This document shows, piece after piece, positions 857 to 61,287 of a stretch of 64,000 bases of DNA. The DNA comes from Octopus sinensis (taxonomy: Eukaryota). The stretch lies in assembly GCF_006345805.1 (NCBI RefSeq), contig NC_043009.1:65906001-65970000 (forward strand). The letters run 5' to 3'. The translations under genes and the position numbers were made by a program. Numbering within the stretch: position 1 is the first letter of the stretch; each line of letters begins with the position of its first letter. Below the pieces are notes generated by a model. That model was not told where the DNA came from and did no database searches. It saw nothing but the letters and a program-made list of their open reading frames with translations.

Positions 857-917
857 CTGGTAAATTTGACAGTTTCACTAATGGTTTCATAGATTTGTCA
901 CTTGAAGAAGAATAATT
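857..917 (-). CDS. Avidin-like gene exon D (61 nt, phase 0-1), Ser-rich linker
   Basis: Acceptor ttcattttcttgtag and consensus donor CAG/gtaagt. Open in the phase left by exon C ([20 protein letters not shown]). No homology support, only splice signals and frame. Confidence 0.7.
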
Positions 918-3900
918 CTACAAGAAAATGAAATACACTTTAGTATATGTGTGTATATTTGTGATTATATGTGTGTGTATATGTTGGAGGGGAGTAGTCA
1001 TATGTGTACACAATAAATTTACACACAAATTACATTCGGAATGAGTAAAATAACTTTTAGTGCTAATGGCAATTATTGCCAAGAGGAGCAAGGGAGACAA
1101 CCCAAAAATGTTAATTCAAAAAAACCAATATGCAGTAAGAGTAAATTGAATTTTTGTCAGTCATTTTACTTAATTGTTAAATGAGTGAAAGATTGTCTCT
1201 CAAAAGACTAAAGACTAATGCATGAAGAAAACTGTGTTGAATCCTTTAGGATTTAAACCGGTCATGTCCTGCTCAAATATTCTTGCTGTTTTATGTTCAA
1301 AATGGCCAGATCCAGCGTGTCACACTTACCCTACAATGACATTCTAAAAATAAACAATTGAAATCTAAAAGCTATGAGATAATGGTAAAATTAATTCAAA
1401 ACTATGAGAATAAATAAACGTTACATTTGACGACAACCTGACTGTTATGGAGGTAAACCACAAGTGAAAAATATCTCACTCGTCAAAGGAACGTTCTATG
1501 AAAGTCAAACAAGTGCAGTACATGAAGCAGTGACATGGTAGCCATGAAAGCAGAGGACATATTTGTTCCAGCTCTCTGCTGTCTAGGTTCAAACCCAGCT
1601 AAGGCCAACTGTGTACTTTCAGCATTTTGGGGCCAACGAGATAAAGAACCAGAACAGGGTGAGAGATTGGTAGGGGTTCTTTGGGTGCTAGAGTGAAAAA
1701 AAGAAAAAAAACTAGAACTAATGCTGCAAGACATCTTGTGTAAGTTCTTGGGTGGTAGATTGATGCCATTCCCTGGTTTATTAGCGCCACCTGGTCCTTG
1801 ACTATTTCCAGCAAAGTTTATTATGTTCCAAGTTTCTGATTTGAGGGCAACTTCTTCTCTCTGTCCCACCTATCATGGAGTCTCTAAAAAAATTAAAGAT
1901 CAAGGCTACCACCCTTCCTTACCTAACTAAATGGTTAAAACAAACATAAACACACCTGTTCAAAGGTGATTAGGGCTTGGGTTGCAACAACAGACTCTAT
2001 TTTAAGCACAATTGTGGCAATTATGAGGAGTGGGGTAAGTTAATATCATTAACATCTGGATTTGATTGGCACTTTATTTCACTGACCCCAGAGTGATGAA
2101 AGGGCAAGTTGTCACTTGTGTGATTTGAACTGAGAACATTAGAAAATTCATAATACCACAAGGCATTTGATCTCACTTTCCAAAGATTCTGCCAGTTTAC
2201 TGTCAAATAACAAAAATAATAAAATAATATTCATACTAATACTACAACTCTTTTCTACTCTAGGCCGGTGGGGGGGGAGTCAATTAGATCGACCCCAGTA
2301 TGCAACTGGTGCTTAATTTATCACCCCCAAAAGGATGAAAGGCAAAGTCGACCACAGTGGAATTTGAACTCAGAATGTAAAGACGGACAAAATACAGCTA
2401 AGCATTTCGCCCGGCGTGCTAACGATTCTGCCAGCTTGCTGCCATTCTACTACTACTACTACTACTAATAATAATAATAATAATAATAATAATCCTTTGT
2501 ACTATAGGCATAAGTCCTGGAATTTGGGGGGATGGGGATAGTCGATTACATCAACCCCATTACACAACTGGTACTTATTTTATCAACTTTGAAAGGATGA
2601 CAGGCTAAGTCTACCTTGGAAGAATTTGAACTCAGAGCACAAAGACAGACGAAACACTGCAAAGCATTTCGCCCAGCGTGCTGATGTCTTTGCCAGCTTG
2701 CAGCCTTGGAATACTGTTTTCTACTCTAGGCACAAGGCCCGAAATTTGGGGGAAGGAGGCCGGTTGATTAGATTGACCCCAGTGTGCAACTGGTACTTAA
2801 ATTATCCACCCCAAAAGGATGAAAGGCAAAGTCGACCTCGGCGGAATTTGAACTCAGAACATAAAGACAGACGAAATACATATTTCTTTACTACCCACAA
2901 GGGGCTAAACACAGAGAGGACAAACAAGGACAGACAAATGGATTAAGTCGATTACATCGACCCCAGTGCATAACTGGTACTTAATTTATCAACCCCGAAA
3001 GGATGAAAGGCAAAGTCGACCTCGGCGGAATTTGAACTCAGTACGTAACAGCAGACGTAATCCTGCTAAGCATTTCGCCCGGCGTGCTAACGTTTCTGCC
3101 AGCTCGCCACCTTTATATAATAACAACAACAACACCAGTAATATATGTATGTCGGCTCCATAAAATGATTATACAAAAAAGAAGGAAATAAAGAGGATGA
3201 AAAGACAGTTGTTTATACATACTGATGGTCGTTCCGGGACGTGTGTATCTTTTTCTTTTCGAGGACCAGGTTTCTGTTCATAACGTGTGAAAATGTCACG
3301 GCCTATTCTGTTTGATTTCCATTTATCATCACAGCTACTTGCCTGAGAGTGTAAGAGCCAGGTGGTCAAAAGTTTCTCGTGCCCTCCGAGGCACACGACA
3401 CACTGACCTGCAACACAAAAGAGAATCCAGGCACATGAGTATAGAAGGACAGATATAAATACATACATCTATATGTGTGCATACACACAAACATATATAT
3501 CACATATACATACATACATATATAAACATTCGTGTATATATATATATAAACATACACACAAAAAATATACACATATCATCATCGTTTAACGTCCGTTCTC
3601 CATGCTAGCATATATATACGAATATAAATATATACATATGTACATACACATATACACACACGTATATACATATGCACACATATGTACATACATGTGTACA
3701 CATATATATATATATACATTTTAAATGATGATGATGATTATATATATATATACATATGTACATACATATATATACATCCTATATTGTACATAAATGTAGA
3801 TATATATATATTATATACACACACAGATATGTACATGCATATACATACACATTATACATATATACACATATATATTTTTCATGGTTTCATTTAGACATAG

Positions 3901-5447
3901 CAATATTAATAAGAAGCTGCTAGAACTCATCTGCTCCAGAATAAAGCAAGAGGCAAATACAGAGCATTATGGGAAATAATTGACGAACAACAACAAGAGA
4001 ACAATAATCAAGTGATCGACTTCATAAGCTTACTGCTGTTTCTGCTATGACACACAACCACTCTGCTCTGAGAATTCACTGTACCTTAAAGCAGAAACAA
4101 CTATAAGCCAATGATTATATAATTCCTGTTTTCTTGCCTTTCAACCAATATATCATCACCATCATGATCACCACCACCACCACCACCATCATCATCATCG
4201 TCATCATCTAACGACCATTTTCCATGCTGATATGGGTTGGACTGTTTGACAGAAGCTGGCAAGTCAGAAAGCTGCACTAAAGTCCAGTTTGTCTAACTTG
4301 GTACAGTTTCTATAACGGGACTGAACCTGGAACCATGTGGTTGGTAAGCAAAGCTACTTACCACACCCCACAACTCTCATATTGGATATTCCCAAACACC
4401 CCCAGGGTGCACCCAAGCTATTTCCCTGTTCACCATCCAAAACAAGCAAAATGTTTCCAAGAAGTGTTCATAGAAGCTGAAGAAGTCAAGTTGGCCAAGG
4501 CTGTGAGGACGTAGAATGGATGGATACCTGTGTAAAAGGTGCAGCTACTGCCGCTGCGTCTGTTCCTATGCAGAACCACTAGGATACCATTCAATTGGTC
4601 AGAAAGGATACAAAGCAGCCCAGGTCAATTCAGGCGAAACGAAAGACAGGATGACCTTGTACACGCCAACGAATGTTTCTACCATACTTGCAGATCAGGT
4701 TTTTACGAAGTCATTGAAATACACACAAACGTGTGCGTTAATTAAGGTGTTATTTGTTAAATATGGAAATTAATTTTTATTTAATTAATAAAAACAAAGG
4801 AAAAGAACGATAAAGGTTGAGAGAGATTTAGTTTAGATATTGTATAAAAGATTTAGGAAGACGGAAAATGGGAGAGAGAGAGAGAGAGAGAGGATGAGGG
4901 GGAGATCTGGATGTAAGGGAGGCAACTGGGATTTGACAAATTTTTACAGATTTTATGCCTATGGCTTACACACACGCATTTATGCAAAGATGAACGTTTA
5001 GTCGGCAAAATGTTATAACAGTGATTGAAGGACCAAGAGATTCGTTTATAGAACTTATCAAACCTAAATTTGTAACTTTTTAATTAAATATACATACATT
5101 TATATATACATATATATATATATGTATAGAAGAATACAGTACATTTAAATACATAATTGCAACTATTAGTGGCTTGGAGTTTTAACTGCTCTTTCTAGTG
5201 AGTCAGATAGCCTATTTTTTGGTTATCTCTTATATGTTTGAATGTACAGTGTATTCTTCTATGAATAATGAATAGTCTATTGACTAAATTTTTCCATCTC
5301 GCTAGACCACTGGTAACTAAGAATTTTTCTATGAATATTCTTGCTACCCTAAGATTTTTAATTATATATATATATATGACTAGAAATATTTTTTGCTTCT
5401 TTTCATGGAGACAAAAGGGTTTATAGGACTGCAAAAAAGAAGTTTTT

Positions 5448-5498
<51 letters not shown>

Positions 5499-8115
5499 TC
5501 CAGTAGTTGAGAGTTCTGTTTATCCTATTTGTTCCACCAAATCTATACACATGTATTTACAAGTTCTCTTAAAATATAGTCAAAGAGTTTATGATCCGAT
5601 ACTCTTAGAACCGAAACAGAATTCAATCCTTGGAACTCAACTAAAAGTCTACAATATATTCTACAAGTTTTTTTTTTTTGGGGGGGGGGGTTATATTTAT
5701 TTTCTAAATTATTAGAACTCTTCTTACAAGGAAGGATCTGTTTTCTAAGAATGGAATAAAATGCCACTGCTTAAAATTGGATAACAACAATAGGTGTTAT
5801 GTATTGAACTTTAGAAAAATCTTGCATATTTTTATTGTTCTACTTATTGTATTGGCAAAGAGTGAGTACACCAATCACTTTGTTTGAAAACATTCTAGCT
5901 TTCCCAGGTTGTTAATTATACATTTACTAACAAAGACTAGTTCACTATTATTGGTATAGTTTTGAAATTATAATTACAGTCAAGAAGCTGCCGTTTTCAA
6001 AGCAGATGTCCATAAATACTCTTCTTTTCAGTGACCTTGAAAGAGATGATCATAATTGCTGGACAGCTGACCTCTGTGGCTATGGTCTTTCTTTCTGTCC
6101 CAAATAACAATGTCAGGCTTGTTATGTTTGCACTTGATAGAAGTTTTGATAGCAATGTTCTGTCAACACAGCTTCTGCTTTTATGCAAGTATTTGACAGC
6201 AGAAGTTGTCATGCAAGCACATAAATATGCAGGATACGTACATACGGATGCACACACATACATGCATATATACATATGCATACACACACATATATACATA
6301 CACATACAATCACATACATACATACATGCATGCATATATAGGCACACACACACACACACATACTGACCCACACACATGCGCACAAACAAACAAAAAAAAG
6401 AAAAAAGGGAACGCAGCTCTTTTTCCAATACCTTCATGACAAAAGACACCTATTAATTGATGATAAATTAAAGAAACTGAAAACGTAGTTTCCAAGCTAT
6501 CATTTTAAAATGTTTCCCCAGGTGTGAATATAATCCACGGCAATTTCCATCAAGTGTAAAAGAAGGTAAAACCTGGAACTCCATCAGTTCTGATAACAAG
6601 GGTTCCAGTTGATCCCATCAACAGAACAGCCTGCTTGTGAAATTAAGGCACAAGTGGCTGAGTACTCCACAGACACTTGTGTACTCTTAATGTAGTTGTC
6701 GGAGAGATTCAGCCTGACACAGAATGTGACAAGGCTGGCCCCTTTCAAATACAGTTCGTTTTTGCCAGCCGAGTGGACTGGGACAATATAAAGTGAAGCA
6801 TCTTGCTCAAGGACGCAATGCACAACTGGGAATTGAACTCATGGCCTCGAGACCATGAGCTGAATTCCTGAACCACTGAGCCATGTGCCTTCAAATTGGT
6901 GTCTGGAGAGAGTTCTTGTATGATGGCGTAGTTTTGTTGGTCTCAAGGGTTAGTCTTTGTCTGGATGTGAATATATTTAGAAAGATGTCAAGCATCGCAG
7001 AAACTGGGACAACAATTGCTCTTCGTAAGATGCCTGTTACCAAAGCTGTTTAGCAGTGAAGGGTTTGGATCATTCTTGTACCTTTTAACCACTTCATAGA
7101 GTCACTTGAAGAATCTTCATAGAACCTTTTCATAACACTGGAATACATCTCAGTTTAACCCTTTCGTTACTGTATTTCTGTTGAGATGCTCCGTATTTCT
7201 TTCAATTACTTTAAATATAACAAAGAATTTAGTAAAATAACTTAGTTATAATTAAGCTAGTGTTAGGAACAGAAATTGTGACTAAGGTTTGGTGGAAGAT
7301 TCTAATTCAGAACTTATGAACACAAGACATTTGTACTACAGAGCCAGCAGAGGTTTCAGTCGGGTTGGTAACGAAAGGGTTAAATACAAAGACCACATGA
7401 GATGAGAAGAAATACTGACATCCTCTGAGATATAAGAGAGCTCACAAATGTGACAAAACCATAGGCATCACTGTTAGTGGAATTGCTGCTATCAATGACA
7501 ACCATTATTGTATAAGTGATTTCACAGGCAGTAAAAAAAATTCTTCATTTTTTAAAATCCAGTTTGAATGCAGACAAATTGGTGAGTAAAAGGTGTTTCT
7601 CTCAATTGCGAAAGAAGAAAAAAATAATCAAAATACTGATAGAGAGTTGGAATATGATAAAGGAAAATGTTGAGCAAGTTTGTTGTTCACAATACCACCA
7701 TCCTACGTGCATGTGTGTATGATGCATACATTAGCAGGAAAACCTGTGCAAAGGAGACCCAAGTTTTAAAGCTTTCAATATACACCCACATCACCATCAT
7801 CATCATCGTTTTTAACATCCGCTTTCCCATGCTTCCATCTGTTGGACAGAATTTATTGAGGTGGATTACTTTCTACAGGTGGATGCCCTTCCTGATGCCA
7901 ACCCTCACCTGTTTCCAAGTTAAGTACTGTCCCCCACCCACACCCCAGGCCAGACATGCCTTTAGAAGAGATTGGAGATGAAGGCCACCACTTACAACTT
8001 GCTTACAACTATGATATGATGTTAAACCAAGGAGACAGATACATACATATTATGTATGTGCATGTGTTTGTGTTTGTATATATATACATATGTGTGTGTG
8101 TGTGTGTGCGTATAC

Positions 8116-8195
<80 letters not shown>

Positions 8196-10302
8196 CACAC
8201 TCTAAAGCAGAGTCGTGTCAGCTAATATACATGAAAAGATGTACAAGTAATATAAAATGAGAACAAAGATGGATGGAAGGACAAATAAACAACGTTTTCT
8301 TTTTGATACATCCCCTAAAACATCCCCCAGCACACCCCCAAATTAGCAGTATTTAGAATCTTATACAGGTTTACCTGGGTACCCCTACTACCTACCCATA
8401 GAGCAAACTTTACATAAGAGTTGGTGAGTTTTATCTCCAGCATACAACATACACACAAAAGCATTCACTGAGAAACCAATGTTCATTTTTATTTCCATAT
8501 ATTCTTTGCGTCGCAATTTAAATTGCATAAATAAATTCCCCATTCAATGCTAGAATAATGCAAAAAACGGTGGCATTTCATTGAGGAATTTATAAGTCAT
8601 TAATAGGAGACTGTGTAAAGCTTAGACATCTAAACTGACAGAAGAGGTCATTATATGTATACAGCACATATCTCTCTTTCACTGTTGCTCTCTTTTATCT
8701 CCAATTCACTAGCCTTTCCTTTCTATCTGGAATACCCTTGTAATCTGCTCTACAACAAGACACCTATCACTGCTGCTCTAGACCCTTAATTTCTCAACTG
8801 GCACGAAGCCACCCCCACCCTCATTACTACTCTCCCACTTCCAAGTTGAGACGCTTACATCTTTTTGACCTGCAATATACTTGGCAACCCTGTTGATGAT
8901 GGTGCCACATAAAAAGCACTCAGGATACTCTGTAATGGGGCTGGAGTTAGCAAGGGCATCCATCTACAGAAACACTAGACCAAAACAAACAATGGGGCCT
9001 GGTGCAAGGCCTTGGCTTTACCAGCTCCAATTACACCATGCCAACATTGAAATGAGGTGAGCATGTGTGTGTGTGTGTGTACAGTTTGGTGTATAAATTC
9101 TTATTTATAGTCTCAGAATAGGGATAGAGTGAATCATCAGCTGTGTGTATATAGGCTTTGCTTCTGTGTGCACATGTGTACCTATGTCTGTGCGTTTGTG
9201 TGTACACATGTGTGTGCAAGTTTGCTTTTGTGTTTAAACCATGGGTGCATGTGTGTGTGTATTGATCTGAGCCAATCAAATAAAAATCATCAGAGTCGGA
9301 GTGAAGTAATGACAAGAGAAATATTACCAATAACTGTGCAGCCAGCGGGACACACATAAATATGGAAACAGAAGCATAAACACACACACATCTTGGTTCC
9401 ATTACATATCACAACCTCTAAATGGTAAGTTTCAAGTCTGAACCAATATCAAGCTATTCCAACATCAGAGCAAACTTTATGATTTTCTCTTCCATCTTGT
9501 AGTGCTCCACCACCCTCAAGAAACCAGGTTGGTTTCTGAGACTTGAGCTGCCAGCCATCCCACAGAATCCCACAGAATGCCTGGCTCTGGCTGATTCGGC
9601 ACCATAGACTTGTTTGTTCGTGTAAAACTGTGAACAGCTTTGAAGACCAGAAGTGTTCTTATCATTGGTGCCAAACTCCCTGTCTGCTGCAGCTTCTAAT
9701 GCTGACGTTGTCATCAAAATGACAGACAAGATTCTATGGAGTGCTGACCTCTACACAATAGAGAAGAAATTGAAGCCAATTTTCTCACAAACCATATTGT
9801 ACCATTTATTAAGAAAAGAACTGAGAGAAAACGAAGTTGAACTGGAGTAGTAATGATAATCTTTCTTCACTTTCTCTCTCTCTCTCTCTCTCTCTCTTTG
9901 GAATAGACATAAAGAGCAAGTGTGTGTATGTGACACACATATGAAGTTAGACATAGCAAAAAAAGAGATGGTGATGACAGCAGTAGTATGTTTGTGAGAA
10001 ATCAAACAGTTTGTTTTTTCTCCTTCAGTCACTTTAATCTTTTTATATCTTCTTTGTCTCCCTCTTACAGGAGGGAGCAGCGTAAGACAGAGAATGAGAG
10101 ACACAAATGAATGGAGGACAGATAAAGAGAGAAGAATGATGAAAACTCAATAATACATTCATTCACATAATTTGTGAGTACGAGACGTTTTGGCACAGCT
10201 GTTTCGGCACAGCTGATTCATTGGCAGAAGTTTTAATGGCCCTCACTTTCTCTCACCTTCTCTCTCTCTCTTTCTCTTTCCTCTCTCTCTTTCTCCCACT
10301 CT

Positions 10303-10337
<35 letters not shown>

Positions 10338-13300
10338 GCATATTTCTCATTATGTGTATGGGGAGAGGGAAACAGTTGAAGTCAATTGTGTAAATAAATT
10401 GTAATGTCCCACTCTCTCACACTCTCTCTGTATATATATTCCTGCAGGCATGTACACAGGCATGCATGCATGTGAGTGTGTGTGTGTATGTGTGTGTATA
10501 TGTTTACCTCCAGTGCCAAAAAAATTCTGTTGCCAAAATAGATCCAAAGTCCAGTCAACCATACTAAATTGTCAGAATCCAAACAACCACGCCACTTGTC
10601 TCATTCCAATAACTTCTTTCCAAGTTCTTGCTGTTAATGTAATTCACATCAGATTCAAAATGACTCAAAATGCCTCCCTTCTTTTTTGTTACCTACCAAT
10701 GACTATTCAAAAGGATTACAGTACAGTTCTATATTTAAGAGATGAGGAATTATGTACATTATTTACATTCGCCGGATATTTGTCCTCATCTTGTTTGTTG
10801 TTAACACAGTGTTTCAGCTGATATACCCTCCAGCCTTCATCAGGTGTCTTGAGGAAATTTCGAACATGGGTTCTCATTCCTAAGGTATTTTTTTGATATT
10901 ATTATTATTATTATTCAGGTCATTGCTTGGAATCAAACTCGAAATCTTGGGGTTAGTAGCCTGTGCTTGTAGTTGTTAAGAGTACAGGCTACTAACTCCA
11001 AGATTCCAAGTTCGATTCCAGGCAGAGACTTGAATAATAATAATAATAATAATGATAATAATAATAATAATAATAACATCAAAAAATAACTTAGGAATGA
11101 GAATCCAGGTTTGTAATTTCCCCAAGACACCTGATGAAGGCTGGAGGGTATATCAGCCGAAACATTGTGTTAACAAGAAAGAAGATGGGGACAAATATCA
11201 GTCAATTGTAAATAATGTAGGATTACAGTAGTTTCACATTAAGAAAAACAGCTGAAAAAAATAAGGGGTTTTTCACTTCAAACATTTTAGTTAAACCAGT
11301 AACATCTTAATAATAAGAAAAAAAGTCATCATACTCTGTTCCCAACCTGCGGTCTGTGGACCCCTGGTGGTCCCCTAAGGTAGTACAGGGGGTCCATAGA
11401 CTAAATTCAAAATTTCCTATGTAAGTAGTTTGCTTACCAACCACATGGTTCTGGGTTCAGTCCCACAACAAAACATGTTCTGATGCAACGCTTGTGCCTA
11501 AATTCCAAACCCTATATGTGTATTGAAGGAGGGCAAGAACCAGTGGTCTATCCATTTCCATAGATCTGTTGCTATATGTATAGATATTCTTTCTACTCTA
11601 GGTTTGGAATTTTGCAAGAAGGGGTTAGCTAATTACATCAAACCCAGAGCCCCATGATAAACAAAGTTATCCTGGTGGAATTTGAACTCAAAACATTGAA
11701 GAAGGAATCTCTCATAAGAGTGTCAGGTAGATCTCACCTTCAGAATCTCCTGTCTTTTACACTTCAATTAGTCCATTGTCAGGAATCATTATTATCATAC
11801 AAAATATTGTCTGAATTTTATTCATTAAAGAATGACTTGTTAATCAGTTAATTAGTGAACTGTTAAAAAAACATATTACACACGTCTGTTTAGAGGTATT
11901 GTCATCAAGACATTGAGGTGTTTTAGTACAATGATAAACGAGTTTCCGTTTACCTATACAGGTGTATCAACCTAGACACATTCATATGCTGGGTGTCTGT
12001 CTGTGTGTGTGTGTGTGTGTGTGTGTATAACAGGTACAGTCTCTTCAATAAGGTTAAAACTGTAACAAAGAAACTAGACCATCTTCAACAGATTCACCTT
12101 TTTAATTATTTCTTATTGAATGTGATGGAATTCCAAGCAATAAACTACGAACGTATTCTTTATTCTTGCTTGTTCTTGTGACAGTGAAAACTTTTATTTA
12201 TTTATTTTTCATAACTTTTTTTTTATTAAACCATTCTCTTCAATAATTTAATGGAACGAAACTGCCATATTCATCTGTAAAAAAAAACCCCGCAAAACAA
12301 AATAAACAATGAAAACTACTTCTACTCACAGTAATACAATTTGGCAGAACATTTTGGATTTTTGCACTATTTCTTTTTTATTTTTATTTTTCTAAAGCAA
12401 TTCAATTCACCAAAGTTGTCTAATTCAAGGGAACAAAACCAACATATTCTAGGAATTGTTTAAGTATTTTCTATTCCTCCTACCAATTTAAAGAACAACA
12501 TTCAATAACATGTTGTTGTTTTTTATTTTTGGTTTTTGCAATTAACTCCACTTTAATACAATTGGAAGAACAGGCCCCATTATATTCATCAACAATTGTT
12601 TTAAAATTCCTTCCACTCTCTCGCAAAACTGCTGCAAATAAACCAGCAGAATCATCAAATTTTTCTTCTTTTTTACAAAGAAATATACCAGCATAATGAG
12701 GAGAATGATTAAATCCCTGTTAATTATATTTACGAATCATTTAAAATTAAAACCATTTTTTGCACCTTAATGGGAGAGTTCACCGAAATGAAATGGCAAT
12801 AAGTTCAAATTCCATAAAGTACACTTCACTATTCACCGTTGCAAGGTCTTTAAAATAAATACCAATAACTACAGATGCCAGCATGCTAATGCTAAAAACA
12901 ACAACAACAGAGTGGAGGTGCAATGGCCCAGTGGTTAGGGCAGCGGACTCGCAGTCGTAAAAACACGATTTTGATTCCCAGACTGGGCATTGTGAGTGTT
13001 TATTGAGCAAAAACACCTAAGCTCCATGAGGCTCCAGCAGTGGTGGTCGTGATCCCTGCTGTACTCTTTCACCACAACTTTTCTCTCACTCTTTATTCCT
13101 ACATCTGTCACAAAGTACCACCACCATGGTGTAACCCACTATCGTGTGGTAAACTTTCATACCCTAGTCTAGATTGCGAATCCTCTGTACCCCACGATGA
13201 TTCATCTCTCCACCCGTTAAAAGCCACCGCTTACGGAATGATGATAACAACGTAGCTTTCGCACCCGTGCAACTGCCAGTCTATCGTGTGAGGCGGGTGG

Positions 13301-14604
13301 ATCTTCAAGTTGCCCACATGCATTCTTAGTAGCTTAGAGTAGGCTCGAATTAGAGATCATTCTTTGTGGCTAATGGCATGAGTCCTGATTTTTTTGGTGA
13401 AGAAGAAGAAGACAACAACAACGGAGGAGTGAACCAAAGCAAACATTGAGGGGTTGATGGTTGTGGAGAGGGGTTGATGGTCGTGGAGAGGGGTTGAAGG
13501 CCTGACTGATAAGTCGGTGGCTTGGTTGAGGGGTTGCTTTGTGTGAATGGGTAAGTAAATGGAAACTAATCGACAAATACCTGATAACACCTTGGGATCT
13601 TGATGTCTGTACCTCTAAACACACAGATTTTATCTTTCCCTCATTTCAGGCTTTAGACTGTGGCCATACTGGGGCATGGCCTCGAATCTTTTAGTCAAAT
13701 GAGTTGACCCCTAGTACCTAAACCTGGCACTTATTGTATTGGTCTCTTTTTGCTGAAATGCTAAGTTGTAGGGACATAAACACACCAACACCGGTTGTAA
13801 CGCAATAGCAGAGGACAAACACAGACACAAAGGCACGCACACACATAGATATGTAAATACGTATAGAATGGGCTTCTTTAAGTTTCTGTCAACCAAATCC
13901 ATTCACAAGGTTTGGGTTGACCCGAAGCTATATTAGATGACACTAGACCAAGACGCCACGCAGTGGGACTGAACCCAGAACTATGTGGTTGGGAAGCTAG
14001 TTTCTTACCACACAGCCACACCTTCATCTATGTTCGTCATTATTTTAACAGCACTCTAATTAACAGATAAATATGTTATTCTTAAAACCAGACGTTTCAT
14101 AATTGAAATTGACAGTTTGGTTGCAGGTTCCTTGACAAGTTTATTCTTTGTTTTACAAGTTTGATGGTTTGGTTGAAGATTTGGCTTGACAGGTTAATGA
14201 TTTCATTAAGGACCTAGATAGCTTGGTTGAGGGGTTTAATTGGAAGATTACTTGATTGGTTGTGGAGTTGATGATTTCGTGGTCGAGTTGATGGTTTGAT
14301 AGCTGGATGATAGATTAGTTGATGGGTTGATCATTTCAGAGAAATCCTAATGATTTGGATGCAGACTTGATGGCTAAGCTTGAAGTTTGGTGGTTCAGTT
14401 GAAAGGTTGATGGTTTGGTCGAGAGGCTGGTGGTTTTTGTACCTCAAGATGGTTCAGCTCCACCCATTACAAACCGCATGGTTCCGGGTTCAGTTCCACT
14501 GTGTGGCACCTTGGGCAAGTGTCTTCTACTATAGCCTCGGGCCAACCAAAGCCTTGCGAGTGGATTTGGTAAGAGGAAACTGTAAAAAGCCTATTGTATA
14601 TATG

Positions 14605-14644
<40 letters not shown>

Positions 14645-17292
14645 TATATGTATGTATGTATGTATGTGTGTGTATATGTTTGTGTGTCTGTGTTTATCCC
14701 CCCCAACATCGCTTGACAACCGATGTTGGTGTGTTTACGTCCCCATAACTTACCAGTTTGGCAAAAGAGACCGATAGAGTAAGTAATAGGCTTACAAAGA
14801 ATAAGTCCTGGGTTCAATTTGCTCGACTAAAGGCGGTGCTCCAGCATGGCTACAGTCAAATGACTGAAACAAGTAAAAGAGTTAACGAATATATGTATGT
14901 ATGTATGTATGTATGTGTATGCATACATACTCACACCATCATCACCAGCCACATCAATCAAACTTTATACCACATGGCGCCTCTTCCACTTCCACTCTTA
15001 AACCAATGTTACTACCAGTGCCACTATCCCTCCCTCACATGCCATCCATGGCCACCACCACCATACACCCACCACATCTCTGTCACTAACAACACTTTTC
15101 TTTTGATCTCTGCAGTGATTATAGTGATTATGGTGCAGAAATGCACTTTAAAATTTTAATAACAATATCCAGAGCTTTGATCATAATATGAGGATAACTC
15201 TTAATTCATTTTAAATAAAGAGATTGGGACCAGCAATTTTGATAACAATAACAGGTTAATGAAATTATAAGCAGCTTCTAGTTCACACACACACAGATTC
15301 ATGGTATGTTTGCAAGAGTAATTCTCATTTAATTATCAAAGATACAAAATGAATGTCAGAAGAAAATATGAAAACTTGGTTAAAATTGGGATCTACAAAA
15401 ATTTTACCACAAGGTAAAATAAATATTTGAGATGCTTTGCCCAAAACGCAAAGAGTAGAAGCTACTTGCAGGATGTTTTGCAAATTCTTTTAAATCCTAT
15501 TTCTTTACTACCCACAAGGGGCTAAACACAGGGATGACAAACAAGGACAGACAAATGGATTAAGTCGATTACATCGATCCCAGTGCATAACTGGTACTTA
15601 TTTAATCCACCCCGAAAGGATGAAAGGCAAAGTCGACCTCAGCGGAATTTGAACTCAAAACGTAAAGACAGACAAAATATCTATTTCTTTACTACCCACA
15701 AGGGGCTAAACACAGAGAGGATGAACAAGGCGAGACAAATGGATTAAATTGATTATATCGACCCCAGTGCATAACTGGTACTTATTTAATCAACTCCGAA
15801 AGGATGAAAGGCAAAGTCGACCTCAGCGGAATTTTAACTCAGAACATAACGGCAGATGAAAAACCACTAAGCATTTTGCCCGGCATGCTAACGTTTTTCT
15901 GCCAGCTGGCCGCCTTCTTTTAAATCCATTGCAATGTTGATAAGCAGGGATCTCAGGGTCACAAGCATTTCGCCCCTTACCCTGTACACTTTGTGTGGTG
16001 TTAGTGGTGTTAAGGGCTGTGATGGAGCTATGTGGTGTTGGTGGAGGGGATTGCAGATGAGGTGGACAGAAGTAAGGACTGCAGGGGCCTGTGACACAGG
16101 CACAGGGCATGCATGGGCAAGAAGCACGTGTGGTCAGTTCAAGCAGAGACAGCAGCGAGACAAGACGTGTTGAATTCATGAGAGTGACCGCTGATTCCGC
16201 CGAGGTCAACAGGTAAGGCCTTTCGTATTTCTTTCTCCTGTTTGCTTCTTTTTCTGAATTAGTCTTTCCCTGCAGAAGAGTTCCATTTATGGTCTCTGGT
16301 CAACCACAGCCAACTTGACCTCGCTTCAGCTGCTGTGCTTATCTCCTTGGCGCCTTTCTTCAGTTGTTTGGCTTCCAGACCAATCTTCTGCAGGAATAGC
16401 ATAACAATTTCATAAAACTAAAATAAATCTTTATATTCTAGAGCAAGGCACTAGAGATTGGTACTAGGGTAAAATAGAATGGAAATAAACTATGATTTAA
16501 GTGTGTCTAATGAGTAAATATAATTAAGAGCGGTAGAAATATTGTTGTTAACAAGAGAGGTAAGCAAGGGAGATAACACCTTATTACATGGATTTAACAG
16601 TTTAATTTCCGATGTTAAATTTTAAGTTTTGAAGTGAAATATTAAAGCAAATATTTTCAGTTTTTGTTGCTAGAATGTTTTTTTTTTAGCTGTTCTTCAT
16701 TCATTTAATCAAAGTTATGGCTTTTAATAACTATTAGATCTTTCCAGATATGACTGTCTTGCTGATTGCATCATTATGACAACTCATTCAAAGATGAGAA
16801 AATTAACTCAAACACAAATTTCACTATAAAATAAAATGACAGAAAAAGTTAATTTTTTCATTTCATTTCCTCCCAAAAATAAATGTGGAATTTTGTTAAT
16901 ATTTGATAGTGGTTGTTCTCCATGAACACATATTTCATAAGTGTTCTGGTGAGCATGCTAACAGACTAACAAAACCAATTCCTCTATAAATGACCCTTTA
17001 ACCTTTTAGTATTTGAACCAGCAATATAAGGCCCAAATATTGTAGGGAGTTTCAATTCTCAGACTAGCAACACATTTTGTTCTTGATCAAAACACTTCAT
17101 TTCATGTTGCCCCAGTCCACTCAGCTGTCAATGTCTAACCCTGTGTTGGAATAGCTTTCCAATCAGGGGAAATGTTGGCCTGCTCGCCTAGTCAGTAGGA
17201 TGGCATCATTCTAAAGCTAAAATGCATTGTGACCAGCAATGTATAACAACATCTGATAGTCAGGTTAATCATGTGATTATATAATATATATA

Positions 17293-17333
<41 letters not shown>

Positions 17334-18880: not shown

Positions 18881-18936
<56 letters not shown>

Positions 18937-19298
18937 CATATATATGAAAGGCTTCTTTCAGTTTCTGTCAAACAAATCCACTCATAAGACTTTGGTCAAT
19001 TACTATATATAACTTCTTCACAAAAAAAAAACAAACAATTATACACACAAACACACATACATAAATGCATGCACACACACACTATAAAGTTTCACTTATT
19101 TAATTTAAGGAATTGACAGAAAAAAACCTCAATTCAAATTAGTAACACTACAAGACAAAGTTCCCTCTAGGGTAGATCAAAATTAAAAAATTCTGAGCTC
19201 AGTAATTAACTGAGCACAGTAATTAACTGAGCACAGTAATTAACTGAGCACAGTAATTAACTTGAATAATATTAATGAATACAAATAATGAGAAAACA

Positions 19299-19344
<46 letters not shown>

Positions 19345-20747: not shown

Positions 20748-20791
<44 letters not shown>

Positions 20792-24283: not shown

Positions 24284-24324
<41 letters not shown>

Positions 24325-36244: not shown

Positions 36245-36285
<41 letters not shown>

Positions 36286-44200: not shown

Positions 44201-45719
44201 CTATCAAAAGCTTTCTCCATGTCAACGAAAGCCAGGTACAGGGGCTTATCTTTGGCTAGGTATTTCTCCTGCAGCTGCCTTACCAGGAATATAGCATCAG
44301 TGGTACTTTTTCCTGGCACGAACCCAAACTGCATCTCATCTAAACTAACTCTCTCTCTAATTAGTTGGGCTATGACCCTCTCCGTAACCTTCATTACTTG
44401 ATCCAACAGCTTGATACCTCTGTAATTATTTGTATCTAGGGCATCACCTTTACCTTTGTAGCAGTTGACTAGTATGCTGCTGCACCAGTCATTGGGTATG
44501 ACTCCTTCGTGTATCACCTGGTTGACTATACGGGTGACTAGGTTATAGCCGACACTGCCAGATATTTTGAGCATCTCTGCAGTAATTCCTGATGGGCCTG
44601 GGGCTTTCCCTGTCTTCATGCTTCTAATTGCCTTAGCTACCACGGAACTATCAACTCGGATAGCTGGTCCCTCTGTAGGGTCAACATTCGGCAGACTCTC
44701 TTTATCCCATTCATTTTCCTCATTCAGTAACCTTTCATAGTGGCGTCTCCAAGCTTCTCTCTTTGCATCCTCATTTAGCGCAAGTGAACCATCCTCCATG
44801 CGAACACATTTCTCTCCTACCACATCACGATTCTCTCTCACACACTGTCTTGCAACACGAAATACCTCAAGTCTTTCATCCTCACGGCGCAGGACATTGG
44901 CAATTTTCTCTTATCTGCTTCCCCTCTGGCTAGATAGACCTGTCTCCTAGCTTCCCTTCTGGCAGTCTGATACCCTTCCCTGCTACCACCGTTCTTCCAG
45001 GCCTTCCAAGCCTGTTTCTTTTGTCTAATAGCCCTGTCAACAATATTGTTCCACCACCACGTTATTTTGGGTCTTAAGGGGACTTTGCACCAGCCACAGA
45101 TCTGGTCAGCGGCTTTCAGCAGGTTGTCCCTCAGAAACGTCCAGTTGTCTTCTACCCCATGTGTAGCTATACCCCCTTCCACTTCGTCAAAGGCTTCAAG
45201 TAACATATCTCTAAATCTCTGTCCATTCGCAGGGGCTTTAAGCTTCCAGACCCTTCTTCTCCATGTTGGTCGTCTTCTAGTCACCCTCTTAGTCCTGATC
45301 CTAAAGTCACTAACTACCAGTCTATGTTGTGGGGTGCATTCTTCGCCTGGGAAGGTTTTGGCATTTTTAAGCAGCCATCTTTCCCTTTTTCTGGCAAGGA
45401 TGTAGTCGATTTGGCTAGTATGCCGGCCCGATCGGTAGGTGACCAGGTGGCTTGTTGGTTTCCTGAAGTTAGTGTTGCAGACCATAAGACTATTCGCATC
45501 GCAGAACTCCAGCAGCCTGGTTCCCTCCTCGTTGCGGGAACCATAACCGTAGCCTCCATGTACGCCATGGAAGCCCCCAGCATGTCGTCCAACATGCCCA
45601 TTGAAATCACCAGCCACAAAGAGAAGGTCCCTGTCGTTCGTCGATGAGGTGGTCTGCAGTAGGGTGTCATAGAAACTGTCTTTCTGTCCATCGGGTAGCC
45701 CTGGCTGAGGGGCATAGGC

Positions 45720-45755: not shown

Positions 45756-48700
45756 AGAGTTTATGGAAAAAACAAAAGACGAAGACAGGTGGTGTACAAA
45801 ACAAACAGATGTATTAGTATAACGCTCAGGAATAGAAAAAGTCTTTTATGTTTCGAGCCTACGCTCTTCTACAGAAAGGGACACAGAAAAAACAAGGAGA
45901 GAAAAAAATGTGTGTAGTGGCTAATGATCTCTATCATCATCATCATCATCATCATCGTTTAGCGTCCGTTTTCCATGCTAGCATGGGTTGGACGGTTCTA
46001 CTGGGGTCTGTGAAGCCAGAAGGCTTCATTCGGCCCAGTCAAATCTGGCAGTGTTTCTACCATTGAAATCTCAATGTTGTGATCATCATCAACATTTAAC
46101 GTCCGCTTTCCATGCTAGCATGGGTTGGACGATTTTGACTGAGGGCTGGCAAACCAGATGGCTGCACCAGGCTCCAATCTTGATCTGGCAGAGTTTCTAC
46201 AGCTGGATGCCCTTCCTAACGCCAACCACTCCGTGAGTGTAGTGGGTGCTTTTTACGTGCCACCCGCACAGGTGCCAGACAGAGCTAGCAAACGGCCACG
46301 AACGGATGGTGCTTTTTATGTGCCACCGGCACGAGGGCCAGGTGAGGCTGGCAATGGACACGAAACGGGGCGGTGCTGGCAACGGTCGCGAAACGGAAGG
46401 TTCTCTTACATGCCACCAGCACTGGTAACACATCTGCAATTTCCATTGATCGATTTCCATTCTGATCCTCACTTGCCTCAACGGGTCTTCACAAGTAGAG
46501 TTTCGACATGCCACCGGCACTGGTAACACATCTGCAATTTCCATTGATCGATTTCGATTCTGATCCTCACTTGCCTCAACAGGTCTTCACAAGTAGAGTT
46601 TTGTGTCCCAAGAAGGGAAGGTATGCATACGTAGGCTGGCTCCATCCTATGTAGAAGGCCACGGGTTATGGACTCACTTGTCCTGCCGGGTCTTCTCGTG
46701 CACAGCACACTTCCAGAGGACTCGGTCTCTAGTCATTTCCTCAGTGAGACCTAAAGTTCGAAGGTCGTGCTTCACCACCTCGTCCCAGGTTTTCCTGTGT
46801 CTGCCTCTTCCACAGGTTCCCTCAACCGCTAGGGTGTGGCACTTTTTCACACAACTATCTTCATCCATTCTCGCCACATGACCATACCAGCGCAAACGTC
46901 TCTCTTGCACACCACAACTGATGCTTCTTAGGTCCAGCTTTTCTCTGAAGGTACTTACACTCTGCCGAGTATGAGTACTGACATTACACATCCATCGGAG
47001 CATACTGGCTTCATTTCTTGCGAGCTTACGCATATCCTCAGCAGTCACGGCCCATGTTTCACTGCCATGTAGCATGGCTGTTCGTACACACGCATCATAC
47101 AGTCTGCCTTTCACTCTGTGCGAGAGGCCTTTTGTCACCAGCAGAGGTAAGAGCTCTCTGAACTTTGCCCAAGCTAATCTTACTCTAGCAGTTACACTTT
47201 CAGCACACCCGCCCCCGCTGCTGACTTGGTCACCTAGGTAACGGAAACTATCGACTATTTCTAGTTTTTCTCCCTGGAAAGTGACGGAAGTTGATCTCAG
47301 AGCATTTTCAGTGTTTATTGTTCCTGAGCATCTGCCACATACAAAAACCATCTTCCTAGTTAGCCTTCCTTTGACATTGCTGCACCTCTTATGTGTCCAT
47401 AGCTTACACTTGGTGCATCTTATAGAGTTTCTACCTACACCTTTTCTACAGATCGAGCAGGGCCATCTACCTGAAGGCGTTTGCGATTTGTCTACCTTCC
47501 TACTGATTACGACTTTGGTTTTAGCTAGATTGACTCTGAGGCCCTTCGATTCTAATCCTTGTTTCCACACCTGAAACTTTTCCTCCAGTTCTGATAGCGA
47601 CTCAGCAATTAGAGCAAGGTCATCAGCATAGAGGAGCTCCCAAGGGCATCCTGTCTTGAATTCCTCCGTTATTGCCTGGAGGACTATGATAAATAGGAGG
47701 GGGGTTGAGGACTGAGCCTTGGTGGACCCCTACCTCTACCCGGAATTTTTTACTGTACTCGTTTCCAACCCTCACCCTACTAGCAGCGTCCCTATACATG
47801 GCCCGCACAGCTCTCACTAACCATTCATCTATCCCTAGTTTCCTCATTGCCCATCAGATAAGGGATCGGGGGACCCTGTCGAAGGCTTTCTCCATGTCAA
47901 CAAAAGCCAGGTACAGGGGCTTATCTTTGGCTAGGTATTTCTCCTGCAGCTGCCTTACCAGGAATATAGCATCAGTAGTACTTTTCCCTGGCACAAACCC
48001 AAACTGCATCTCATCTAAACTAACTCTCTCTCTAATTAGTTGGGCTATGACCCTCTCCATAACCTTCATCACCTGATCCAACAGCTTGATACCTCTGTAG
48101 TTATTTGTATCTAGGGCGTCACCTTTACCTTTGTAGCAGTTGACTATTATGCTGCTACACCAGTCATTGGGTATGACTCCTTTGTGTATCACCTGATTAA
48201 CTATACGGGTGACTAGGCTATAGCCGACGCTATATTCATATTAGAGGGAAACCACTATGTGGACACCCTTTTGTTAGAAATAGATCCACATAGTGGTTTC
48301 CCTCTAATATGTATATAATACAATTTTACTGAACCTTCAGTTTTTTTATATGCTAGACCACTGGTGTGAAATCGATGTTTATTAAATTAATATCTAATTT
48401 CTCACCCTCATTTTAAATATATATATATATATATACACTCTTTACTCTTTTACTTGTTTCAGTCATTTGACTGCAGCCATGCTGGAGCACCACCTTTAGA
48501 TGAGCGAATCGACCCCAGGAAAGGCAAAGTCGACATCAATGGAATTTGAACTCAGAACGTAATTGCAGACTAAATACTGCCAAGCATTTTGCCCGGCGTG
48601 TTAACGATTCTGCCAGCTCACCACATTTATATATGTGTGTGTGTGTGTGTGTGTATATATGCATGCATGTATATATGTATGTATGCATGCATGTATATAT

Positions 48701-51700
48701 GTATGTATGCATGTATGTATATATGTATGTATGCATGCATGCATGCATGCATGTATGTATGTATGTATGTATGTATGTATGTATGTATGCATGCATGCAT
48801 GCATGTTTGTATGTGTGTATATATGTTCTCTACTGCTAATTATTTGAAATCTTCATACAAGGAAAGATCTTGCTTCTAACAAAGATACCAAACTGCATTT
48901 TCGTACTGGAGGTAACAAAAGCCATGTCATGTTGAACTTCGGAATAGTCTTGAAGATTTTTACAGTTCCACTTACAAATTGTATTTGTAATGGGCAAGGT
49001 AGCTGCTTTAATTCCTTCTCTGAAAAGCCTGAACTTTTACAAACTGATACTTAGGTGTTTACTAAAAAAACCAACTGCACCAAGTATTACTGGTATAAAT
49101 GTGAATTTACAATCCAGATTAGAAGCCGAGAGTGTAGTGGGTGCTTTTACATGCCACCGGCACAGGGGCCAGTCAGGTGGTACTGGCAACAGCCACGCTC
49201 AAATGGTGCTTTTACGTGCCACCTGCACGGGGGCCAGTCCAGTGGCACTGGCAATGACCTCGCAAGCTCCCATACTATTTCCTCTTTCTCTTTGGTTCTT
49301 CAAGTGATATTCACATCAATATTCTTGCCTCTCCCAAACGACTATATCCACCTTGTTATGTTTGCTCTTAGTGCAATGGGAATCTTCCCTCGACATTGAT
49401 GTTTATGCATACATGCACTAATAGGGTGTTTCTCATTTATTCCAGGACAGTCTCCCCGCCCCCCCCCCGCCTGCCAATGGCACTGCATATCGTCTTAGCG
49501 ATGGCATCATGTCACATAGGGTGGTAGTACTTTGATGACATTTATGGGCAGCTGCTGATCATCCCATGTGATGTCTTCCACAGATGTCTTCATCAGTTGC
49601 ATCGTCTGGCACCAGGTGCTTCATTACCTATTTTGTTGATTAGGAATTTTGCAGCAATCTCCAGCTCTTCGATTGCAAATGCACAGCGTTTCAAGTGTAA
49701 TACGATGTAGTGGTCGTGAGTCCAAGAGAGGCTGCATTTCATGTTGATATTAGTATCGTCTTTGAGGAACATTACCAAAGCATCGTCTTTTTTCTGAGAT
49801 GCTGATCATTTCACATCCAGCTCTTCTTTGAGGTATGTGAGCCTGACTGTTTTAGGTTTGTATCAGAATTCATTAGAAAGAGATTGCTTCCTAATAAGTT
49901 CACTGCCGACATGCAGGGTGCCATTATTTTTACTTTCCAGCACTAAGTCTGTGTATTTTTTTTTCTGATGTTGTTTAGCAGATGCTGTCTGAGAGATGCA
50001 ACAGGATATCTGAAGGCTGCCACTGGCATGGATGCCAGTCATGCGGTGCTGTCATTGAATTTGATTTCGATTTCACTTGCCTCAAAAGGTCTTCACAAGC
50101 AGAGTTTAGTGTCCAATGAAGGAAAGGTATGCATAAGTGGGCTGGTTACACCCCTACCATAGGCCATGGGTTATGGTCTCACTTGGCTTGCCAGGTCTTC
50201 TCAAGCACAGCATATTTCCAAAGGTCTCGGTCACTAGCCATTGCCTTGGTGAGGCCTAATGTTCGAAGGTCGTGCATCACCACCTCATCCCAGGTCTTCC
50301 TGGGTCTACCTCTTCCACAGGTTCCCTCAACCTCGAGGGTGTGACGCTTCTTCACACAGCTATCCTCATCAGAAAGCGATAATGGATTTAATGCCAAAAT
50401 AAACAGAAGTAGTGAAAGACTACTATCTCCTTAGAATATTCCCACTGAAATATTTATATCATCAAAGATGATCTTTCCACTCTCAGTTGTGTGAGGATTG
50501 TTCCTCAAGTCTTTGTGAGCCTCTCAATGGCAGCAATTAAGATCGCAGGTATCTTTGCGATATGTAAACATTTCAGCAGCCATTTGTAGGGAACAGAACT
50601 GAATGCTTTCTGCTAAAGTCTCAGTCACAAGGTTACGGCAGTGTTTCTTTTCGTCACACACTGCAGCTTTGTTTATCAAAAGCTTTTTGACCTATCCCCA
50701 CATCGACTTCTTTCCACCAGCCTGCTCATTGGTCACTATGTTCTTGGACTCACAATGATGCTGGAGGAATTGGTTGAGGTAGCTTGTGTACAGCAATGTT
50801 TCTACTAACTCAGTGGTTTCATTCTTTGTTACAAGATTCATCCATGCTACAAGAACCCAGTTTGGTATGTCAAGCTAATCTTCTGTAATTCTTTTGAAGA
50901 TACACATTAACCCTTTCGTTAACAATCTGGCTGAAACCGGCTCTGGCTCTTTAGTATAAATGTCTTGTTTCCATAAGTTTTGAATTCAAATCTTCCATCA
51001 AACCTGAGTCACAATTTATGTTCCTAACACTAGCTGAATGATAACCAAGTTATTTTACTAAATTCTTTGTTGTATTTAAAATAATTGGAAGAAACACAGA
51101 GCATCTCAACAGAAATACAGTAATGAAAGGGTTAAAGACTTTCTGTGGCAAGTTAGCCTCATGTATCAGTATCCACCCATTATGTCTCTTCCAGCTGCCT
51201 TCCTATTATGGTAAAACTTTCAGAGCTGACAGTCTACATTTTACCATTCATCATCATCATCATCATCATTTAATGTCCGCTTTCCATGCTAGCATGGGTT
51301 GGACGATTTTAACTGAGGTCTGGCGAACCAGATGGCTGCACCAGGTTCCAATCTTGATCTGGCAAAGTTTCTACAGGTGGATGCCCTTCCTAACAACCAC
51401 TCCGAGAGTGTAGTGGGTGCTTTTTACGTGCCACTTGCACGGAGGCCAGTCAGGCATTGCTGGCAATGACCTTGCTTGAATCTTTTTGCACAGGGGCCAG
51501 TAAGGCGACGCTGGTAACGATCATGTACAAATGGTGCCCTCTGGCAACAATCATGCTCGGATGGTGCTCTTGGCACCCTACTACTTGATCAATTACCACA
51601 ACGCATTTGGGTTGAAGTCCCTCTTTTCATCTTCCACATTACACTCTAGAATGATTCAAAATCTTCTTGAAAAGGGGTTTTCATCAGAGTATAATAAGGC

Positions 51701-52989: not shown

Positions 52990-53023
<34 letters not shown>

Positions 53024-53654: not shown

Positions 53655-53687
<33 letters not shown>

Positions 53688-53712
53688 GTATGTATTTACA
53701 GGTATGCATGTA

Positions 53713-53758
<46 letters not shown>

Positions 53759-54223: not shown

Positions 54224-54287
<64 letters not shown>

Positions 54288-54685
54288 CCTTATATAGATG
54301 CAGCAAAACTTAAGTGCAAACATACATGTGTGTATATATATATAGAGTGTATATATATTTATATATATATACACACGTGTAAGTGTGCAGAAACGCCAAA
54401 CACATGCATATGTAAAGAAACACTTCAGAAATCGTAAGCTTTTGTATAAAAATTCCAGCCATAGCATGGGAGGAAATTAAATATATCGATATAAATTCGA
54501 TATAATTACCCAATTAGCTAAAAAGAGAATAACTATACATATTGAATTAATCTCATGGTAATATCGCATAGTGGTGTTTTCAAGTAGTGTAGAGCCAAGT
54601 TCATCCACAACGAAAACTAGTAATTATTTAAATAGCTACTTATAATATTAATTTTATTGATTATTATTATTGTTATTAATGTTAA

Positions 54686-54716
<31 letters not shown>

Positions 54717-56025: not shown

Positions 56026-56081
<56 letters not shown>

Positions 56082-57746
56082 CAAGATCAAAAATCAAATG
56101 GAAATTGTTGTTGTGATACCTGTGCCGGTGGCACGCAAAAAGCACCATCCGAACGTGGCCGATGTCAGCGCCGCCTTGACTGGCTTCCATGCCAGTGGCA
56201 CATAAAAAACACCAACCGATCGTGGCTGTTGCCAGCCTCTCCCTAGCGCCTGTGCCGGTGGCACATAAAAAGCACCCACTACACTCACGGAGTGGTTGGC
56301 GTTAGGAAGGGCATCCAGCCGTAAAAACACTGCCAGATCAGACTGGAGCCGGGTGCAGCCTCCTGGCTTCCCAGACCCCGGTCGAACCGCCCAACCCATA
56401 CTAGCATGGAGAACGGACGTTAAACGATGATGATGATGGTGATGATATACAAGCATATCCACGTGTATGTGTAGCTTACCTTTTCTCTCTCTCTCCCTAA
56501 TATATATTTACATACACAGATAACAATATATATGAGTGTATGTGAGTGAGTGAACATGTGTGTGTGTGTGAGTGAGTGTGTGTGTATGCATATTTATATA
56601 CATACGTGCTTTATCTTTCCCTTTTACACAGACACACACACATTTAAACTGATCCACTACTCAATTCCTTTCTGTGCATCTACATACATCAACACACATA
56701 TACACTCACTGACACATCCAGTGAACACCCAGGTACATTTTCACCTCCCTCACCACACACACATGTATATATCACCTGATAGGTGTAGAAAAGGAAGCTG
56801 GTGAGATGAACTAACGACCTCCATGCCAATAAATCTTTATTGGATCTTACAAGAATCTGACCAATTCTTGGGCATAGCATGATAAAGAAGTAAGAATTAC
56901 ATCCATTTCACTGCTGTACACACACACACACATATATAATGCTTTTTCCCCGCCACTCATTAGAATTCCTGCCACTTCCGCCACCATCTTAACCATCTTT
57001 GAAAACTGGTGGACATCAGGCATCAGTTTTAGCAACCAGGAATATTCATGGAACTAAAATGTTTTATAAAATCTTACTGTTTGAAGCAAGGCTTCCCAAC
57101 CAAGTTCAAACGCTAGCTAGAACGGTAAAGGGTTCCGGTAGTCTGACTTTGGCAAATGGACAGGATTCAAATAAATACAAAGAATCAATTCTCTCTCTCT
57201 CTCTCTCTCTCTCTCTTTCATGGATAGACAGAAATAAGAATATATTACAATTTAAGCTCTCATCACCTGGCATAAAGCCACCTCCGTCAACACTACACCC
57301 ACCTCTTCAGTTGGGAGATCTTGTGAGTCACTCAGTGACTTCACCAGGGCCAATGTCCCATAAAAAAAGCACACAGTACTCTCTATAAAGTGGATGACAC
57401 GCTGTTCAACCCATGCCAGCACATACAGACAGACAGACAGGCAGATAGACAGACAGGTAGCTAGACAGACAGACAGGTAGATAGACAGACAGGTAGATAG
57501 ACAGACAAACAGACAGGTAGATAGACAGACAAACAGACAGGTAGATAGACAAACAGGCAGACAGGTAGATAGACAGACAGGCAGACAAGTAGATAGACAG
57601 ACAGGCAGACAAGTAGATAGACAGACAGACAAACAGATAGACAGACAGATAAAGAGATAGATAGACAGACACACAGACAGACAGACAGATAAAGATATAG
57701 ATAGACAGATAGACAGACAGATAGATAGATAGATAGACAAAGAGAC

Positions 57747-57783
<37 letters not shown>

Positions 57784-59292: not shown

Positions 59293-59329
<37 letters not shown>

Positions 59330-61287: not shown

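Follow-up and report, generated by a model that had tools for sequence, protein, structure and literature searches.

The window, as we call the whole 64,000-nucleotide stretch of Octopus sinensis contig NC_043009.1 (positions 65,906,001 to 65,970,000) that was analyzed, contains four exons of an avidin-family gene on its minus strand (Table 1). All four exons, which we name A to D in the order in which they are joined, have a pyrimidine tract and AG in front and GT behind, with the donor hexamers gtaagt, gtaaac, gtatgt, and gtaagt, respectively. The joined exons comprise 510 nt and form one open frame of 169 codons with no stops. The splice signals, together with this open frame, confirm to the base the four in-frame minus-strand exons that a first-pass annotation of the sequence had put forward. 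That annotation had also stated that the ORF track misses exon B. This can be explained by the ORF in which exon B sits, which has just 42 amino acids and would fall under a higher length cut-off.

Exon A encodes strands 1–4 of an avidin barrel and carries C4, N12, S16, Y33, T35, and the L3,4 lid loop (avidin numbering). Strands 5–6, with W70, S75, T77, and W79, are encoded by exon B, while exon C supplies strands 7–8, with C83, W97, W110, D118, and a family-specific cysteine pair (C..C / SSC). The 3′ part of exon C forms the start of an inter-domain linker.

The window does not contain the complete gene: the first exon present, A, opens at an acceptor, and the last, D, closes at a donor. The exon A acceptor is in phase 1, with the first two bases of the exon finishing a Gly codon that starts in an upstream exon, and exon D closes at its GT donor, also in phase 1, with no stop codon. 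In-frame upstream of exon A there is only translated pyrimidine tract, containing no ATG and no signal peptide. Using the orthologous protein of Argonauta hians (described below) as a tblastn query, we found neither a signal-peptide exon in positions 61288-64000 nor the next linker exon in positions 1-856; tblastn also revealed no additional avidin-like coding sequence in the A/B intron. Their Argonauta counterparts are located 30 kb upstream of exon A (signal-peptide exon) and 0.9 kb downstream of exon D (linker exon), such that both would fall outside the window. Judged by these boundaries, the window holds the internal part of a longer gene, which continues past window position 1; by comparison with Argonauta, exon A is exon 2 of this gene.

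Table 1. Exons, introns, and repeats of the window, with the positions of exon counterparts at the Argonauta hians locus (L004)
Feature	Position in window	Strand	Remarks
Exon A	61287-61105 (183 nt)	minus	AG acceptor, GT donor; same boundaries in Argonauta (L004 33148-33330)
Exon B	21504-21424 (81 nt)	minus	AG/GT; Argonauta counterpart L004 47282-47362
Exon C	3407-3223 (185 nt)	minus	AG/GT; Argonauta counterpart L004 51316-51500
Exon D	917-857 (61 nt)	minus	AG/GT; linker exon; donor shared with Argonauta
A/B intron	21505-61104 (39,600 nt)	minus	full of transposon remains and microsatellites
B/C intron	3408-21423 (18,016 nt)	minus	
C/D intron	918-3222 (2,305 nt)	minus	
LINE-type retrotransposon	43273-45617	minus	in A/B intron; 522-aa ORF, RVT_1 E 2.9e-32, weak PHD-finger match
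LINE, second partial copy	46948-48231		90% identical, 1.3 kb away
LINE fragment	36035-36246		
Tc1/Sleeping-Beauty-type transposase remnant	35112-35450	plus	HTH_SB E 1.2e-12; N-terminal helix-turn-helix region only
SINE-like repeat, ~200 nt			at least 15 copies, both orientations, 72-90% identity
SINE-like repeat, examples	19423-19626, 40105-40282, 42213-42420, 46112-46322, 51286-51466, 56199-56407, 63268-63433		
Trinucleotide-type microsatellites	23917-24402, 25882-26489		poly-valine/poly-threonine pseudo-ORFs of 110-160 aa

The window also contains repeats of several kinds (Table 1). Immediately before the 522-aa ORF of the LINE lies a 259-aa ORF with no Pfam match, and tandem SINE-like units at 42213-42989 produce a spurious ORF of 258 aa. 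AC/AT-rich microsatellites occur beside every exon of the avidin gene. An Rfam scan of the window returned zero matches.

We searched 1.84 billion representative proteins exhaustively with HMMER and obtained 562 matches. The top match (E 8e-122) was a 416-residue protein from Argonauta hians (GAB1601759.1; P0004 in our set) that is annotated as "uncharacterized protein LOC115218420 isoform X1." Word-indexed protein searches, which returned only distant proteins, mainly from metagenomes and Logan, missed this orthologue. To call the gene cryptic, as had been done on first reading, overstates the case, as the orthologue is already annotated in GenBank, although as an uncharacterized protein. The number LOC115218420 presumably belongs to the range of the Octopus sinensis RefSeq annotation; in that case, the octopus annotation includes the gene as well. 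The peptide encoded in the window aligns with Argonauta residues 28-196 colinearly and without gaps, with 149 of 169 residues identical (88%); within exon D, identity is 17/20 residues.

Comparison of the DNA at the two loci revealed that the Argonauta gene, which consists of ~10 exons across 54 kb, has AG and GT at identical codon positions for all four exons that match the window. Similarity between the window and the Argonauta locus was confined to these exons and ended within ~10 nt of each boundary. Over the 510 nt, the sequences are 85.7% identical (dN 0.081, dS 0.523), and the window introns (39.6, 18.0, and 2.3 kb) are 3- to 4-fold longer than those of Argonauta. Since splice positions are shared, similarity is confined to exons, and dN/dS is 0.154, we conclude from the comparison that the four exons are real and part of a gene under purifying selection. 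Support for the junctions consists of the splice signals and of a gene model from another species. By the same comparison, the window gene is the orthologue of the LOC115218420 locus, and the window carries exons 2-5 of about 10. Other isoforms may exist besides the isoform X1 annotated in Argonauta.

We considered one other way in which the transcript could end. Read-through of the exon C donor (positions 3169-3222, minus strand) would add a hydrophobic tail followed by a stop, giving an anchored protein with one barrel that ends at 3169. This tail resembles the hydrophobic C-termini of homologues. However, exon D is kept in Argonauta and the DNA similarity ends 8 nt past the exon C donor, and we therefore rejected this form. 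The tail, which is not conserved in Argonauta, is probably a chance occurrence. No conservation in Argonauta was detected past either the exon C or the exon D donor.

The spliced peptide matched the Pfam Avidin family (PF01382) with an E of 1.1e-34 and 119.7 bits, the curated gathering cut-off of this family being 24 bits. The match, a check that the first-pass annotation had itself proposed, covers the whole profile (positions 2-116 of 116), and this end-to-end alignment bears out the earlier claim that the four exons build one full avidin barrel. In a PDB sequence search against solved structures, avidin, xenavidin, zebavidin, and BBP-A scored ~1e-18 to 5e-20, while streptavidins scored ~1e-13. 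We modeled the barrel of the window with AlphaFold from a 24-sequence alignment and obtained eight strands (pLDDT 77, pTM 0.76), with low confidence in the L3,4 lid loop (residues 47-54). Foldseek placed zebavidin (4bj8) closest to this model (TM 0.86-0.88, rmsd 2.0 A); next in order were xenavidin, avidin, BBP-A, and streptavidin.

We aligned the peptide with chicken avidin and core streptavidin using MAFFT. At avidin positions 12, 16, 33, 35, 70, 75, 77, 97, and 110 the barrel has N, S, Y, T, W, S, T, W, and W. Positions 79 and 118 are W and D, the streptavidin states, in agreement with the F79W and N118D changes noted on first reading. The alignment shows retention of both the residues predicted to bind the ureido and thiophene rings of biotin (N12, S16, Y33, T35, and D118) and the tryptophan box (W70, W79, W97, and W110). 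The nine residues listed in the earlier statement are present, but its claim of a complete set of ligand residues holds for the ring-binding and hydrophobic-box sites only. At the contacts with the carboxylate tail, T38E, T40E, S73G, and F72H depart from avidin, with S75 retained. E38 is nearly invariant throughout the invertebrate relatives, where it lies inside the motif EYRTAVE. In avidin, several of the carboxylate-tail contacts are made by the backbone, and streptavidin differs at these sites as well. The changed tail contacts may give the barrel an affinity or ligand preference different from that of avidin, and the acidic lid could alter affinity or favor biotin amides.

Comparison with vertebrate avidins (chicken avidin, AVR, BBP-A, xenavidin, and zebavidin) places the barrel in the same Pfam family, with a common eight-stranded fold and 35-38% identity. 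The C4-C83 disulfide pair of avidin is retained in the window barrel, which likewise has the ring-binding residues and tryptophan box of the vertebrate proteins. The window barrel differs from the vertebrate avidins in its L3,4 lid loop and carboxylate contacts and in an extra conserved cysteine pair (GQCxxC ... SxC). This second pair, the SxC part of which lies just ahead of W110, is conserved among the invertebrate relatives. Identity to streptavidin, with which W79 and D118 are shared, is ~31%; streptavidin has no disulfides.

Because selection has preserved the ring-binding residues and the tryptophan box, unlike in fibropellins, the barrel likely binds biotin. Fibropellins are invertebrate extracellular chains in which an avidin-type barrel, related to ours in sequence, forms one part; our P0050 is Lytechinus pictus fibropellin-3. 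By analogy, the window barrel could be a structural or oligomerization module that binds no biotin and assembles a cell-surface or matrix complex, as in the sea urchin proteins. Avidin-like domains that do not bind biotin exist (Yanai 2005, as cited in PMC10336842), T38, T40, S73, and F72 are replaced in our barrel, and some barrel-1 copies in other phyla, for example those of Actinia and Ridgeia, have lost W70 or W110. However, three fibropellin-type sequences (P0050, P0057, and P0059) have D16, R/Q70, and K/H/R110, while the window domain retains S16, W70, and W110, and the pocket residues are under purifying selection. Moreover, fibropellin-type proteins combine EGF repeats with the avidin-like barrel, whereas neither EGF nor CUB domains occur in the Argonauta protein; the ORFs of the window likewise yielded no EGF-like coding sequence. 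We therefore regard a non-binding module as unlikely, although it is the alternative that survives best, and retain biotin binding as the preferred reading.

The Argonauta protein contains far more than the barrel encoded in the window. Following its signal peptide (residues 1-27) and barrel 1 are a linker of ~80 residues, barrel 2, and a hydrophobic C-terminus. Pfam detected two Avidin domains in the 416 residues and nothing else. Barrel 2 has the avidin states throughout (N12, S16, Y33, T35, W70, S75, T77, F79, W97, W110, and N118). The C-terminus (...SASSYHGASIISPVLFILLLVAL) has a mean Kyte-Doolittle hydropathy of 3.0 over 13 residues and is followed by one residue. Counting Argonauta, nine homologues of the tandem-avidin type have a hydrophobic stretch as their very C-terminus, beyond which no charged residue follows. 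The tandem protein of Owenia instead has a transmembrane helix and a charged cytoplasmic tail of ~40 residues. Since the tails occur in tandem proteins and are absent from the single-barrel relatives in hemichordates and echinoderms, membrane attachment, as predicted from sequence, goes with the two-barrel form. The Argonauta tail resembles a GPI-attachment signal, a reading that applies simple hydropathy rules to the orthologue and homologues, and points to a cell-surface tether rather than to free secretion. For the octopus gene itself, we infer the signal peptide, second barrel, and tail from this 88%-identical orthologue.

These data bear on the proposal, made in the first-pass annotation, of a self-contained small secreted avidin, that is, a freely secreted protein with a single barrel that acts as a soluble biotin scavenger in eggs, mucus, or venom. 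The four exons hold the whole barrel, the verified eukaryotic avidins are all secreted and soluble (PMC8033661), single-domain secreted relatives occur in hemichordates and echinoderms, and the isoform X1 name allows for shorter isoforms. In addition, a GPI-anchored form can be shed, which would yield a soluble product. As described above, however, exon A lacks both a start and a signal peptide, a conserved donor rather than a stop closes exon D, and the read-through of the exon C and exon D donors is unconserved. As the orthologue continues with another barrel and a hydrophobic tail, the proposal is not supported in this form, and we consider a free single-barrel product improbable, slightly more so than a barrel that binds no biotin. 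A membrane-tethered protein with two barrels remains the reading that we favor.

An AlphaFold model of the full-length Argonauta protein suggests how the two barrels might be arranged. The model, built from a shallow alignment of 30 sequences, has a pLDDT of 72.7 and a pTM of 0.64, with low confidence in the linker and tail region. Its best PDB matches were the engineered single-chain dimeric streptavidins 6s50 and 6s4q (E 5e-19, rmsd 7-8 A), onto both barrels of which the model superposed with a target-normalized TM of 0.77-0.79. Matches to single barrels gave E ~1e-9, and the TM to the circularly permuted dual-chain avidin 2c4i was 0.44. Since superposition of only one barrel would give a target-normalized TM near 0.45, well below the observed values, the two barrels are modeled roughly as a streptavidin subunit pair. 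We treat this packing of the orthologue as a lead. While 6s4q, 6s50, and 2c4i are artificial fusions, the orthologue is a natural protein whose gene has introns, whose linker is far longer, and which ends in a membrane tail. In the model, then, the tandem gene looks like a natural counterpart of the engineered single-chain dimers.

Could the exons be remnants of a pseudogene in decay, or ORF fragments that line up by chance? The introns are indeed very long and transposon-filled, yet the 510 nt contain no stop or frameshift, the Pfam E is of the order of 1e-34, the splice positions are identical to those of Argonauta, and dN/dS is 0.15, making this very improbable. That the gene is of bacterial streptavidin type, acquired by horizontal transfer or present as contamination, might be suggested by the streptavidin states W79 and D118, but is effectively refuted by spliceosomal introns of 2-40 kb and is further opposed by the better scores of animal avidins over streptavidins, the animal-type C4-C83 cysteine pair, and homologues of the same architecture across animal phyla.

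Relatives with two barrels were found in the cuttlefish Acanthosepion pharaonis, whose protein model is partial, in two annelids (Owenia fusiformis and Ridgeia piscesae), and in the sea anemone Actinia tenebrosa, all annotated as uncharacterized proteins. W70 or W110 is lost from the barrel-1 copies of Actinia and Ridgeia. Several metagenome or Logan contigs also encode the two-barrel layout. One of these, a eukaryotic contig from an ENA metagenome assembly (L001), contains a two-barrel homologue at 6097-6330 and about 10070-10873 with a single intron, located at the site of the window A/B intron (..LLG|TAPYDY.., G|TAP). This homologue adjoins a 7tm_1 receptor gene and an ASTER-domain gene.

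The invertebrate deuterostome avidins, comprising the sea urchin "strongavidin," lancelet avidin, and avidin-like database entries, are single-barrel proteins with no hydrophobic tail, and none is molluscan. The closest single-domain relatives of the window barrel are from Ptychodera (P0014), Glandiceps ("avidin-like," P0018), and Antedon ("avidin-related protein 4/5-like," P0027). These single-domain deuterostome proteins share the EYRTAVE motif and the extra cysteine pair with the window barrel.

In a neighbor-joining tree, the barrel-2 copies grouped together in 104/200 bootstraps, and the window barrel fell with the barrel-1 copies, a grouping recovered in 14/200 bootstraps. Support for these groups is weak because single-domain forms nest among them. 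Our data suggest, mainly through shared motifs, that the tandem duplication took place before the cnidarian-bilaterian split.

At the Argonauta locus, barrel 2 (L004 54488-57208) shares with barrel 1 an intron position at G|QC. Barrel 2 also has an intron of its own within strand 3 (..KGE|YRT..) and is without the G|TAP intron. An old duplication within the gene, with introns gained or lost later, would fit this pattern.

A second avidin-domain gene lies on the chromosome-scale contig of the Argonauta orthologue (BAAFZT010000020.1). Its 536-aa product (GAB1601784.1, P0021; "LOC115218491") has two avidin barrels, each of which follows ~160 residues with no Pfam match. Judged by this second gene, octopods seem to carry two or more genes of the avidin family.

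The eukaryotic avidins known so far are secreted, and many eukaryotic genome sequences are still unexamined (PMC8033661). In open-access papers and bioRxiv, we found no paper characterizing a mollusc or cephalopod avidin, a natural tandem or membrane-anchored avidin, or LOC115218420, in keeping with the earlier remark that no characterized cephalopod avidin is known; where "avidin" appears in mollusc papers in these sources, it is the reagent. We know of no characterized eukaryotic avidin that is anything other than a soluble, single-barrel, secreted protein. The gene is an uncharacterized variant of the well-known avidin family rather than a new kind of protein, and its family would be evident from any domain scan of the orthologue that is already annotated.

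A model that accommodates these data, and that we consider probable, is that the window contains exons 2-5 of a gene for a membrane-tethered avidin of the secretory pathway, a natural "single-chain dimer" that most likely binds biotin. The product would enter the secretory pathway via its signal peptide, as do the vertebrate avidins, which differ from the orthologue in being soluble and having one barrel per chain rather than two barrels and a membrane-anchor-like tail. Each barrel would bind one biotin, and the two barrels of one chain would pack like an avidin subunit pair. Two chains may form the usual assembly of four barrels, in which W110 of the neighboring barrel would close each pocket. 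The C-terminal tail would hold this unit on the outside of the cell membrane, and the unit might also be shed from there. The physiological role could be to withhold biotin from microbes, to capture it for the animal's own cells, or both.

A wider idea, which we offer tentatively and regard as doubtful, is that membrane-tethered natural single-chain dimers are an old animal family, present in sea anemones, annelids, and cephalopods, whose barrels were duplicated before these phyla split. The ancestral function would then have been biotin capture at the cell surface, much as the GPI-anchored folate receptor captures its vitamin, and the soluble egg avidins of vertebrates would be a later antimicrobial offshoot.

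If the recombinant protein proves not to bind biotin, the gene would represent another fibropellin-like reuse of the barrel as an assembly module. If instead the octopus gene encodes a conserved, membrane-tied avidin with two barrels and an intact pocket, the characterized avidins would extend to molluscs, and engineers, who had to construct their single-chain dimers, would gain a natural template in the tandem protein. Avidin is among the most used proteins in biotechnology, and its biological role is still debated. A tethered binder would offer a new angle on the purpose of avidins, as it would suit the capture of a vitamin, or nutritional immunity on a local scale, better than the bulk sequestration of biotin in egg white.
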